Source: Dimorphilus gyrociliatus
Lineage: Eukaryota; Animalia; Annelida
Assembly: GCA_904063045.1 (NCBI GenBank)
Contig: CAJFCJ010000007.1
Coordinates: 3,169,404 to 3,233,403 of the forward strand
DNA: 64,000 bases
Direction: 5' to 3'
Part shown: piece by piece, positions 13,177 through 31,200 of the stretch
Position numbering within the stretch: the stretch's first letter is position 1
How the letters are laid out: the number at the start of each line of letters is the position of its first letter
Made by a program: the position numbers and the translations under genes
The notes under the pieces: generated by a model
Databases searched by the model: none
Seen by the model: the letters and a program-made list of their open reading frames with translations, nothing else
What the model was told of the DNA's origin: nothing

Positions 13177-14739
13177 ATGGTAAAAACTTTTATTATATTA
13201 AAACAAAGTAGCTAGTTTAATATTTTAATTATTTATTTAGATTAATTAATTACCTTTATATAACATTTTATATGTAAAAATAAACTTTCTTTTATTTTTA
13301 CTAGACCGAAGTGAAACTCTCAGAATCCCAGCAAAAAGGTATGTTAATCATTTCCTTCTTCGAATACTAACATCCTTTATTTAATTCTAAATATGTAATT
13401 TTTCCCTTTTTTTAACTTAAGATAGTATATTTTAAAGTTAGAATCTAAGTGAAAACCCTCTAAATATCTTAATCTCTTATGCTTAGAAGAGGGGAGGAGA
13501 TCAAATTTCCATCGGCTAACCAAAAAGTTTATGCTCCTTTCTAGCATACTTTTTTCATTTATTGACCTTATTCCAACTCTTTCCGCTATATAGGAAGGAG
13601 AGAAGAGAAGGGATATGCTGGTGGAAATTTTTAATCTTCTCTACTGATTTATATAAGGCAAATGGTAGATTATTACGACTAGTTTCGAGTGTTATGGTCC
13701 AATTTTTAAAACTTATACATGTATTTGTTTATAAAAGGGGAAAGATAAGTTATAAAATACATCGGTAAATGTAAGATATATTGAAGAAAATTTACTAATA
13801 TTTATATAACATTTCTAAAAACCATCAATCCATACAAAAAGAGTTTAAGAATGTTTTCCGTTAAATACTTTTAATTCGTTAAAGACAATAAGAAAACTAG
13901 TTTGTATAAATAATTTTCTTGCCGTCTGCTTAAGTGTTTTCTTAGACAAGTAAACTTGTAGTTTCTTTATTTAATTCTATATATTTGGCGCCATCTAGCG
14001 ATATGCCTTATTTTTCTTTAGCTTGTCAAGACGCTTTCAATGCTTATGATAAGAGGGATCAAGGAAAAATTAAGACTGGAGATATTAGCGGAGCTATGAA
14101 GGATATTGGTCACACTATTAAGCCTGATTGGTTGGAGAAATTCGAAGATGAAATCGATACAGAGGGAACCGGCTTTATTGAATTCGAAGAATTTTGCGAT
14201 ATTGTTAAGAGAAAGATGCAAGAGGATGAAGACGAAAGAGAGTTGAAAGAAATCTTTAGGGTCCTAGATAAGGAAAAGAAAGGAGAGGTGAATACTAAGA
14301 GAAAAACAATAATAGTAATAGTAATAACATTAATAAAAACCAAACTAAAAACAAAAAGGTTGACGTAAATGAACTTCGTTGGATTTTGAAATCACTCGGA
14401 GATGATTTGACGGAAGAAGATATCGATGATATGATCGCCGACGTCGATACAGATGGTTCTGGCTGGGTTGATTACGAAGGTAAATGATTAAATAGTGATT
14501 TTAATAATTAAAAAATATTTTTTTGGTAAGTAAGGATATTTTTATTGTTTACATCCGTTTTATTTGTTTACCTCGTATTTTCTTTCTTTAACAAAAAAAA
14601 AGACTCTATAAACTAACAAAAAAGCTTATTCTGTTATGTATTATTTTTCTACGAATGTATGCATACATCTCAGAATCATATACAACAATCTTCTTATACA
14701 TTCTTTGCAGAGTTCTGTAAACTGATGATGTCCGACTGA
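13177..14739 (+). CDS. TnC: Troponin C, lophotrochozoan (scallop-like) type, 4 EF-hands
   Basis: ATG-only first exon (13177-13179), then exons 13305-13339, ~14022-14287, 14359-14479 and 14711-14739. EDERELKEIFRVLDKEKKG..LRWILKSLGDDLTEE..DTDGSGWVDYEEFCKLMMS closely matches remembered molluscan TnC. Site IV is a canonical EF-hand. The exon 2/3 phase is unresolved (see findings). Confidence 0.85.
13988..14000 (+). promoter_or_regulatory. CTCF-like motif
   Basis: GCGCCATCTAGCG. Related copies occur at 12543, 22087, 22117, 40083, 42229 and 45844. Confidence 0.45.
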
Positions 14740-27150: not shown

Positions 27151-28502
27151 ATGGAGAGGATTGTACTTTTAAATATAATTTTGATTGGAGGTTTGTTTTA
27201 TAACATTGACATTATTCAATCGCTATCCTGCTCGGGAGTGGCTCGTTGCGAGTTGACACCTTGGAACGCTTGGGAACCTTGTTCAGAGAAATGCGGAGCC
27301 GAAGGCAACTCGGGCAGAAGTAGAGGTGTATGCTGTACTTCTACACAGTCAATAAAGCAATGTGCAAAACAATGTCTAATTAAATATTCAGACTTAAGTG
27401 AAACAAGAGTATGTGGTACTGTTTGTAACGAAGGTCGTTGGCTTCATTCAAACAAGAGTTGCCTTTGTAACATAGGATTTACGGGAATGTGTTGCGATAA
27501 ATGTAAATAATAATTTTGATTAAAGTCTATTCATAGGATGGAAAGTTGATATTTGATAATTATTTTGCAGATTGCCCAAGCGGCAGCTACGGATTAAACT
27601 GCACATTTAAATGCAATACAGAATGTATTAACAAATTGTGTAATCATATCAATGGATCATGTACGATTGGCTGCGTTCAAGGATATTGGGGTGAAAAGTG
27701 TAATAAGAAATGCGCTAATTGCGACAATATTAAGTGCGATCGCGAAACTGGAACCTGCCCGCATGGATGTCAGGCGGGTTATTTCGGAAGGCTCTGCAAT
27801 AGACGATGTTCAACTTGTAAAAAGGGATTATGCCATGCGAGAAGTGGTAAATGTACTAAAGGTTGTATTAGTGGATATTTTGGACAGCGTTGCCGTAAAA
27901 CATGTGATTTATTACATTGTGTTAAAAATAATATTTGTACTAATGAGCTGCCTGGATGTTTCAAATTGAAGAATGGCTCGATAAAGTTCGATAAATCTAA
28001 AATAACATCAACTAAGACAATATTCCCATTCTCAACGACAACTCAAATTCATACGTCAGCAACTCCAGATAGTGGAAGCAATAGAGCCAAACCTCCTCCT
28101 CCTTCTCAAAGCAATAATTCTATGATACCATCTCAAGTTGTGCTCTATGTATTTGCTGGTCTATTTGTTCTTTTTTTACCGCTTGTTTTAATTTTAATAG
28201 TTGTGATTGTTGGAATTCGTAGAAAGACTAAGAAAACTTCTCGGGAATTAACTCAAATGAGGCAGATCGTTCAGCCTGTTAATCCAAATACCTATTCGTC
28301 ATTCCCAAGTTTACCATCTAATCCTCCGTTGTATAGTGAAACTTTTCAAGCATGTGCTCCCGAACCTACTAAAGAACCTATAAGCAACACTAACGAATAC
28401 GAAGCTGTATGTGATGATTCGGATAATAGGTCTAACCAAAAGAGAAAGCTATCAGCGGAATATTTGGAATGTTTACCAAGTGATGAGGAAGAAGCGGTTT
28501 AA
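27151..28502 (+). CDS. Single-pass receptor with signal peptide, TSP1-like and EGF/laminin-EGF repeats, Thr/Ser stalk, TM helix and Tyr-motif tail (MEGF/CED-1/SCARF-like)
   Basis: Two exons (intron 27503-27570). Contains WNAWEPCSEKC, repeated CxxGxYG/WGxxC units, a hydrophobic segment VVLYVFAGLFVLFLPLVLILIVVIVGI, and a cytoplasmic tail with YEAV and YLECL. Confidence 0.8.
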
Positions 28503-28960: not shown

Positions 28961-31200
28961 ATGTCTACTTCTCGAGCCAGAAAAAACGATGTAAGATGTT
29001 ATTTTACCTTGAAATTAAACAACAATATAGATGATTTCCTTTAATGTCTCTTTTGGTATATAGCCAATGCATAAGAAGATTCAACCGAATCCTAAATATA
29101 AGCATGTCAGAGCTACTGTGGACACAGGTTCGATCATGCTGATTTTAATTTTAAGATATCAATTTTCTTCTCTCCCAATAGGAGCAAGTCTTACGAAATA
29201 TATGGAAAAGATTGAAGATATTAGAAAAAGTAATTAATTTTCTTTTCCTCATGTAGGCCTATAGTCGTTAGGAGCAACAGCGTTATTCGCCGTATAATTC
29301 CTTTTATGAGCTATTAAGCAAATAGTGGCAAATAAGAGAAATTATGAAAAATACCGCATGAATAAACATTTCTTTCACAAACTCAGATTATAAGTATCGC
29401 CCAAATGAAAACTTCAAAAGAATGAAAATAACAACACTAGTTCAATTGGTAAATGACTATTTGCAAAACCATTAATTAATTCATGTGGAAAATTTTTTCT
29501 TAAAGATCATTCAAGTGCATCGTATCCAAGCCCATGAACTAACCGCAGATATACCGCCAACCCCAACTTCTAGAGGTGATGGTAGAGATACAGCTATAGC
29601 TGATGAAGAAATCAAAGAAATGCATTATAATAACAAGGATGATGGAACTTTAATAACTTCTCCTTCGCCTTCTTTAGCTTTAACTGATGGAGATTATGGA
29701 CACTCAAATCCTCCAGAGTCTTCCAGATCAACCTTACTCAGGTAAAAGGAAATAATTTAAACAGTACACACTATAGATAATCGATATGTCATTTATAGTG
29801 TTGCAAGAGGTATTGGAGAACTGGACTTGAATCACCCTCCTCCTGCCCCGGAGAATAAGTTTAATGCGTACGATTTATCGCCCTTTCTAATCTTGGACTG
29901 TCGAGGAGACGACGCTTATCAACAATGTCATATTTTACCCGGTTTGTTTGTTATTCTAAATTATTCATTCTGCTATTCATTATTCAAATTAGTAGGTTTC
30001 TATCTTATTGAAAAAAATTTCGGTTTTTAGCTTTCAGCTTTCCAAAAGCCATGCTCTCAAGATCAGTTAATTGGGCTTCAAAGGAATTACTATCCTTCGT
30101 GAGTAACAGATTTTATCGATTATTGGTTTAGATTTGCATAATTTGCAATTCAGTATTTTGTTCTATTTTAGCGTAATGCTACAGGTAAAATTATTGTCGT
30201 CTACGATGATGACGAAAGAGTAGCTCCAGACGTTGTTTGTACTCTTATGGATAGGGGCTACGAAAATGTTTTTATGCTATCTGGAGGTAAATTAAATCTT
30301 TTATCTAATGACAAACTCTATTAATAGTATGTTTATGTTATATCAATGTGTAAAGGATTAAAAGTTGCCGCCACAAAATTCCCGGAATACTTGATAACTG
30401 GAACAATTCCAAATGGTTTAATGGAAAATGAAAAGCCAAAAAAGGTTTATTAGATATAATTGAAGATTAAACACTTCTTGAACGCAGTAAAACAATCTTT
30501 TCCGTTATAGAACATTAATAAAGAAATTCGACCAGTCGTTTCAAGAAAATCTTTTACTGATGATGAAATTGATAGTGTTGAAATATACTTGGATAGAGCT
30601 TTAGAAGATCACAGTACAGGAAGTAAGCTTAAGCAAATATTTATCTCTTGAATAATAATCAACCTTTCTTCTATTATTTATATATACAGTATATGTTTTA
30701 TTTACTTAAAAGCAAAAAACAGGCGTCTCTATAATTTTTATTTTCTTCCCTTTTTTCTTTTTTTATTTGCAGCGAGTAAGTTACTTTTTTCTCTCCCTTC
30801 TTTAATTTCTTTGTTATTCACGCTTTATATTTTTACATACAAAATCTATTCAGCAAAAAATAGTTTATTCGCACATAATGTAAAAACAATCAAATAGAAA
30901 ACAGCACAGCTTTGTTAGATAAAGTATTAGCGTTTTCTTTCTTCTTTGTTATTTAATTTCAACAATTACTAGCTGATTAGATTGATATAGAAAAGAAGGT
31001 ATTTCTATATCATGCAATAATTATTGCTGTAGTTAAAACTGCAAATATACAGTATATATATATATATATATATATTATAATTTTATAAAGGTCGACTAAG
31101 TAAAGTGTCTACTGCCAGTAGTAGATCGACTAAAATGAGCAGTAGAGCCTCAGTTTCCTCTAAAGCTTCCGACGGACGTCCAGCATTTAGACCCCCATAA
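28961..31200 (+). CDS. CEP41: Centrosomal protein 41 (rhodanese-like domain, ciliary)
   Basis: [78 protein letters not shown]|LKV. Confidence 0.93.
30773..30775 (+). other. Candidate 3-nt microexon (CGA) in the last CEP41 intron
   Basis: ~30-nt polypyrimidine tract, then TTTGCAG|CGA|GTAAGT. Inclusion preserves the reading frame. Confidence 0.6.

Follow-up and report, generated by a model that had tools for sequence, protein, structure and literature searches.

Can a single codon, standing alone between an acceptor and a donor splice site, be an exon? The question is raised by the last intron of the CEP41 gene of the annelid Dimorphilus gyrociliatus, which lies in a stretch of 64,000 nucleotides (nt) analysed here as a whole and called the window; positions are those of the window unless a contig is named. 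An earlier note, made from the letters alone, had proposed the triplet CGA in this intron as a candidate microexon that adds one threonine to the tail of the protein. We consider it likely that CEP41 has a genuine exon of 3 nt in the CGA at 30773-30775, and the evidence that carries this view is the conservation of the triplet, together with both of its splice sites, in the corresponding intron of a related species.

The window is AT-rich animal DNA (27-38% G+C) from an assembly of 77.9 Mb in 349 contigs; the published assembly is described as having about 350 scaffolds and a median intron length of 66 bp (PMC7854359). The homology of the gene model was searched exon by exon. Exon 6 alone led in a HMMER search to sturgeon CEP41-like proteins, and a profile search that included exon 5 led to proteins that bear the name CEP41 in hundreds of vertebrates. 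Exons 10 and 11 align with the C-terminus of vertebrate CEP41, both in the helix F-T-x-[DE]-[DE]...Y-L and in the tail motif S-R-L-S. Matches of single exons to Rhodanese (Pfam) were weak and below threshold because the domain is split over several exons. Judged by these alignments, the gene is CEP41, the name that it had already been given in the earlier note. CEP41 is a Joubert-syndrome gene and is needed for the glutamylation of tubulin at cilia.

In the reconstructed exon model introns 1 to 10 measure 73, 54, 157, 57, 57, 89, 73, 69, 66 and 468 nt, the last being indeed unusually long against the 54-157 nt of the other nine. It begins at ...ACAGGAA/GTAAGC (30622/30623), ends at ...ttataaAG/GTCGACTAAG (31090/31091) and lies in phase 1. 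Within it stands the unit tttttattttcttcccttttttctttttttatttgCAG/CGA/GTAAGTTAC, in which a consensus 3' splice site (TTGCAG) and a consensus 5' splice site (GTAAGT) flank a frame-preserving, stop-free segment of 3 nt, against an upper limit of 30 nt for such a segment. The earlier description of this unit agrees with the sequence in every letter: a perfect acceptor and a perfect donor are 3 nt apart, the pyrimidine tract in front of them (29 of 30) is the strongest in the gene, and inclusion of CGA turns G-S-R into G-T-S-R by giving GGA ACG AGT CGA. The GTAAGT after CGA is also the sole perfect donor hexamer of the gene. A second pyrimidine-rich tract (27 of 30 at 30786-30815) and, near the 3' end, a (TA)n repeat belong to the downstream one of the two sub-introns that use of CGA would create. 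The acceptor of exon 11, ataaAG here and taaaAG in the related species, is weaker than that of the candidate microexon. Skipping of CGA would give the exon 10-11 junction word ACAGGAAGTCGACTA and inclusion ACAGGAACGAGTCGACTA; a processed retrocopy with either junction was not found in the genome.

The last intron has no match in Rfam and is, by a genome search, single-copy except for its (TA)n tract. An origin of the intron from a repeat or transposable element was rejected, since only this tract recurs. The word ATATACAGTATATA followed by (TA)n (31043-31089) is found at dozens of loci of the genome with 90-100% identity; it is a microsatellite-associated motif, of which a shorter copy lies at 30683-30694.

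Within one genome the motif by itself could be due to chance. For CAGNNNGTAAGT the window has two occurrences where 0.4 are expected, and 8 of 100 shuffled windows also reach two; for the looser YAGNNNGTRAG it has 5 where 4.0 are expected. A genome-wide search for polyY-YAG-N(1-15)-GTAAGT gave no excess at a spacing of 3, which accounted for about 7 of the first 100 matches listed. What lifts the motif above chance is its conservation in the orthologous intron of another species. As a separate observation, a SOWAH region (L016, G000:C7:4027400-4029000, minus strand) contains several units of the form YAG/NNN/GTAAGTAT or GTGAGTAT that are built like the unit in CEP41.

The other species is represented by a Logan contig of 2774 bp (L012, from SRR23372231) that covers CEP41 exons 4-11 of a relative of Dimorphilus; the best match to exon 6, P0001, lies on it and is 96% identical. 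The CEP41 proteins of the window and of L012 are 89.5% identical (256 of 286 amino acids), and 56 of 108 four-fold degenerate sites (52%) differ, which corresponds to about 0.9 substitutions per neutral site. The five other introns that can be compared show 49-62% identity in an optimised alignment, near random for their base composition. Their longest shared core words are of 5-7 nt, and the constitutive donor and acceptor hexamers differ too.

The orthologous last intron of L012 measures 696 nt (1339-2034) and is not globally alignable with that of the window. It holds ...aattttctttCAG/CGA/GTAAGTTAtttc, with a conserved block at 1568-1581 and CGA at 1571-1573. The acceptor reads TTTCAG, and CAG/CGA/GTAAGTTA is kept exactly; the longest exact word common to both last introns is the 14-nt CAGCGAGTAAGTTA. 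The earlier note had named the lack of a conserved AG-NNN-GT in orthologous introns as a finding that would speak against a microexon, and here the motif is conserved together with the triplet itself. Inclusion of CGA leads to G-T-S-R in both species. In both, pyrimidine-rich tracts lie on either side of the unit; in L012 the tract is weaker than in the window, and the zone free of AG before the acceptor extends over 105 nt.

When the L012 intron is shuffled, an AG-NNN-GTAAGT anywhere in it has a probability of 0.006 and the exact 12-mer one of 1e-5, and any shared 14-mer with at least five G or C was obtained in 4 of 20000 shuffles (P ~2e-4). At 52% four-fold divergence, 14 bases are expected to stay unchanged under neutrality at ~3e-5 per site. 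By this comparison selection acts more strictly on the block than on the constitutive splice sites of the gene. A 3-nt exon would need such tight selection, there being no space for exonic enhancers within it. The comparison of the two introns thus gives good support to a real exon of 3 nt.

We propose that what looks like one last intron of 468 nt consists of two, of 150 and 315 nt. U2AF and U2 would recognise the long pyrimidine tract and the CAG, and U1 would pair with the perfect GTAAGT three bases further on. The two introns would be removed one after the other, because with AG and GT only 3 nt apart U2AF and U1 cannot sit there together. Inclusion would place one Thr between Gly322 and Ser323, right before S-R-L-S, and give a protein of 359 amino acids; skipping would give the ancestral-looking form G-S-R-L-S. 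The S-R-L-S motif of this Ser/Thr-rich basic tail is conserved from annelid to fish. It is a matter of speculation that the extra Thr adds a phospho-acceptor or shifts the spacing in the tail. The anatomy of the sequence, its exact conservation in a diverged sister species and an eMIC-type domain in the genome are shown; that CGA is spliced into the mRNA, its proportion there and any tissue specificity are inferred. The features are collected in Table 1.

Table 1. Features of CEP41 in the window and the candidate units compared between species
Feature	Position	Strand	Description
CEP41 orthologue	28961..31200	+	11 exons, 358 codons (359 with the microexon), consistent phases, GT..AG borders
Exon 10	30511..30622	+	ends ...ACA GGA A (Thr-Gly and base 1 of the Ser codon), donor GAA/GTAAGC
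Upstream sub-intron if CGA is used	30623..30772	+	150 nt; 38-nt pyrimidine tract, then TTGCAG; 48-nt AG-free zone
Pyrimidine tract and acceptor TTGCAG	30735..30772	+	29/30 pyrimidines at 30735-30764; UGC at -5 to -3
Candidate 3-nt microexon CGA	30773..30775	+	would insert Thr (A/CG) and restore Ser (A/GT)
Downstream sub-intron if CGA is used	30776..31090	+	315 nt; donor GTAAGTTA at 30776-30783; weak acceptor ataaAG
Exon 11	31091..31200	+	(S) + 35 residues + stop codon
Unit of the window and L012			CAG/CGA/GTAAGT, 3 nt; inclusion would give G-[T]-S
Candidate unit of L015			CAG/CGATGA/GTAAGTAT, 6 nt; inclusion would give G-[TM]-S
Candidate unit of L014			TAG/CCCTTTCATCAA/GTAAGTAT, 12 nt; inclusion would give G-[TLSS]-S

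The position of the last intron in CEP41 is old and fixed. A phase-1 intron in the Ser codon of S-R-L-S (A/GT CGN) is shared by the window, L012 (junction 1338/1339), L014 (15035/15036), L015 (11708/11709), L026 (3430/3431) and the fish Danio aesculapii (L019, 9118/9119). L014 (ERZ24900295:ctg6692l) and L015 (ERZ26052287:ctg53001) are distant invertebrate-type contigs from ENA metagenome assemblies, each with a CEP41 exon 6 that is ~59% identical to that of the window gene and with a last intron, at the same phase-1 position, of 4192 nt and 3548 nt, respectively. In the window, L012, L014 and L015 a scan for in-frame units (3-33 nt, a minimum of 13 pyrimidines in 20, YAG and GTRAG) yielded exactly one unit per intron. 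Every one of them starts with C, which makes the inserted codon Thr, and ends with A, which restores the Ser. In L015 the unit is accompanied by a UGC, two CTAAT motifs that resemble branch points, and ~80 nt free of AG.

The units in L014 and L015 are suggestive as counterparts of the CGA exon: in shuffled introns a form with GTAAGT, Thr first and no stop appears in 0.4-0.7% (P 0.004-0.007 per intron). A wider reading can be tentatively entertained, although we hold it to be rather doubtful: that the last intron of CEP41 harbours an old microexon whose length varies, with 3 nt in dinophilid annelids and 6 and 12 nt in two lineages of distant invertebrates, always with Thr first and always restoring the Ser of S-R-L-S, and that it would belong to an invertebrate cilium-gene microexon programme running in parallel with the Srrm3-dependent microexons of photoreceptors and cilia in vertebrates.

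Other contigs contributed less. L037 was rejected as an extra outgroup: it is a second copy of L015 with 95-98% identity, and its conserved block is uninformative. The outgroup contigs L017, L018 and L020-L023 are too short for a comparison of introns. L027 and L028, metagenome contigs whose CEP41 exon looks mammalian and that are probably host DNA, possibly human, were left out of the comparison, as was the Homo sapiens entry P0140 among the vertebrate matches. The 40-nt unit repeated in tandem at the end of contig L029 (3170-3263), in at least 2.5 copies, takes in the last part of exon 10 together with the donor; the repetition is probably an assembly artefact. The last CEP41 intron of L015 also contains, at 13879-14424, just downstream of the 6-nt candidate exon, an open reading frame (ORF) of 181 amino acids that may be a transposon remnant.

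Several results weigh against a genuine exon and its older counterparts. The motif class is not enriched genome-wide, the search for polyY-YAG-N(1-15)-GTAAGT giving 620 matches against 1010 for the reversed control; this rarity may come from selection against spurious pairs of close splice sites, or from base composition. Only one sister species is informative on the conservation. The UGC near the AG, to which the earlier note had drawn attention, is present in Dimorphilus (TTGCAG) and is not kept in the sister species, where the acceptor reads TTTCAG and no UGC is found in the 40 nt upstream. In shuffled L014 and L015 introns any in-frame candidate appears in 18-19% (P ~0.18-0.19 per intron), and the stricter criteria for the form with GTAAGT and Thr first were taken from the dinophilid exon and partly fixed after seeing the data. 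Neither the 432-nt intron of the compact invertebrate contig L026 nor the 1463-nt intron of Danio aesculapii, at the same position and phase, contains a comparable unit.

Six metatranscriptome-like contigs of other taxa with full-length CEP41 ORFs (JGI L025, L030, L032, L033, L034 and L035; 328-375 amino acids) all have the skipped configuration, with an uninterrupted x-S-R-(L/M/A/I)-S. From these junctions and from the taxa without a unit, the skipped form G-S-R-L-S is read as the ancestral configuration of the protein.

To the same side of the balance belong the protein searches. Length-limited word searches and a HMMER search returned no full-length or transcript-derived CEP41 of Dimorphilus, and a G-T-S-R isoform was not seen among their matches, which included no RNA-derived sequence of this species. 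The word search with exon 5 (78 amino acids) had no match, its length window leaving out full-length proteins. The listing of a two-row profile search was filled with vertebrate CEP41, and there was no annelid protein among the first 120 matches listed. The word search with the sister-species ORF P0001 matched P0001 itself only, and the HMMER search with exon 6 gave exon-ORF fragments and no full-length Dimorphilus CEP41.

How else could a block with both splice sites be conserved? The unit could be an intronic pseudo-exon or decoy that binds U2AF and U1, is not ligated into the mRNA, and influences whether the long last intron is removed or kept; a kept intron would cut the tail short, because read-through from exon 10 stops after 10 codons. 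Such a decoy would account for a block conserved as splice signals, for two sites so close that they cannot be occupied together and for the pyrimidine-rich tracts found to either side of the unit in the two species, and it would fit a species that removes short introns best (PMC7854359). However, the three bases between the sites are conserved along with the sites themselves, the unit preserves the frame in every taxon that has a candidate, and both sub-introns are of ordinary, spliceable size. We regard a decoy as improbable.

A single site of the unit could also be used, to give an alternative terminal or poison exon. Either the CAG acceptor would be used with read-through into the intron, or a conserved TATACAG upstream would be used with the GTAAGT to define an exon of 86 nt here and of 109 nt in L012. 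The word TATACAGTATAT, common to both species 90-110 nt upstream of the unit, points in this direction, as does the 105-nt AG-free zone of L012 between the upstream AG and the acceptor of the microexon. However, TATACAGTATATA(TA)n is a common low-complexity word with dozens of loci in the genome, for which reason the sharing of TATACAGTATAT is weak evidence, and an exon of 86 or 109 nt would shift the frame and soon run into a stop. The read-through frames, 41 codons here against 12 in L012, are not conserved, and an alternative terminal exon was rejected on this ground. Altogether the use of one site has very little probability.

Just as hard to credit is that a splice-like word without function survived in both species by chance. 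That the motif class is not enriched, that one such match per 64 kb is unremarkable and that there is only one informative species pair would all agree with chance, but the neutral expectation of ~3e-5 per site and the shuffle tests (2e-4 to 1e-5) do not, and no other CEP41 intron keeps more than 7 nt. Recursive splice sites, or ratchet points, are AG/GTAAGT junctions in long introns of tens of kb. A site of this kind was rejected, the exon not being of zero length and the junction GGAA/CGAGTAAGT having no GT after CGA is joined to exon 10.

If CGA is the genuine exon that we take it to be, its inclusion could be a default or could be regulated. The SRRM_C/eMIC domain (PF15230) is encoded in the genome at G000:C13:1373574-1373720 with 29 bits against a cut-off of 27, and the next exon scores 20.5 bits; the exons read ...RRRPHSPSHLDRRRIT and ...SARKRPVPYYRP. 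The two exons (G000:C13:1373186-1373720, minus strand, L001) adjoin an RS-rich exon, and the locus is a candidate for the Srrm234 microexon enhancer of this genome. eMIC acts as a microexon enhancer across bilaterians (PMC8797185), which would thus be available in this species. Three traits would fit an eMIC target (PMC8797185), namely the long pyrimidine tract, the UGC at -5 to -3 in this species and AG-free zones of 48 nt in the window and 105 nt in L012.

However, in flies the exons that depend on eMIC have very weak splice sites at both ends (PMC8797185), whereas the acceptor and donor of CGA are the strongest splice sites of the CEP41 gene, which argues against an eMIC target. The flanking sub-introns of 150 and 315 nt suit splicing by intron definition, and the species splices short introns best (PMC7854359). 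Because the UGC is TTC in L012, the sites are the strongest of the gene, the acceptor of exon 11 is weaker and the sub-introns are short, default or high inclusion appears about as likely as a regulated, eMIC-dependent inclusion that would act as a switch in neural or ciliated cells, such as the tissue-specific switch that the earlier note suggests.

Upstream of CEP41, on the same strand, the window contains a neighbouring gene (27151-28502) whose cysteine-rich product has EGF-like repeats, a transmembrane segment and a tail on the cytoplasmic side. Some 460 nt separate its end from the start codon of CEP41, and it has no significant Pfam match when searched as a single ORF.

If CGA is an exon, the published gene model of this 'miniature annelid' probably misses a residue or an isoform, and insertion of one Thr would tune the conserved S-R-L-S motif in the tail of this ciliary protein. 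One-codon exons would then be detectable from DNA alone, as islands of perfect conservation in saturated introns. A possible series of 3, 6 and 12 nt at one intron position would offer a tractable case for the evolution of microexon length.

CEP41 is absent from the supplementary microexon tables of two studies (PMC8797185; PMC12626424), and in the literature searched no CEP41 microexon was found; one paper that deals with both CEP41 and microexons concerns the skipping of human exon 10. Among known systems the closest are the 3-nt microexons of vertebrates, in CLTC (retina-specific, VastDB HsaEX0015816; PMC9303857) and in cytohesin-1, where one codon switches between diglycine and triglycine (PMC6314551). 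As in these, the candidate in CEP41 is a single in-frame codon with a full acceptor and a strong donor, conserved with its splice signals and changing the protein by one residue. Unlike these, which are proven at the RNA level and known in their tissue regulation, the CEP41 exon is deduced from DNA conservation only, and it would lie in a disordered Ser/Thr tail.

The eMIC programmes governed by SRRM3/4 (Srrm234) operate in neurons and photoreceptors (PMC8797185), and retinal microexons are enriched in cilium genes (PMC9303857). With these the CEP41 unit has in common the long tract, the UGC by the AG in this species, the extended AG-free zone and short introns on both sides; a domain of the eMIC type is encoded in the genome, and CEP41 is itself a ciliary gene. 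It differs from the eMIC exons of flies, which have weak sites (PMC8797185), in that its sites are the strongest of the gene, and the UGC is absent in the sister species.

With recursive splice sites the unit shares the juxtaposition of an acceptor and a perfect donor in an intron that is long for its genome. Unlike there, the three bases between the sites would stay in the mRNA, no 5' site would be regenerated, and the intron measures 468 nt.

Finally, Drosophila troponin T has a 3-nt microexon, and short microexons are missed by aligners and in annotation (PMC8042270; PMC7821500; PMC8831610). Gene and phylum are different, but the CEP41 candidate would likewise be a one-codon exon in an invertebrate, of a sort that escapes standard mapping and gene prediction.

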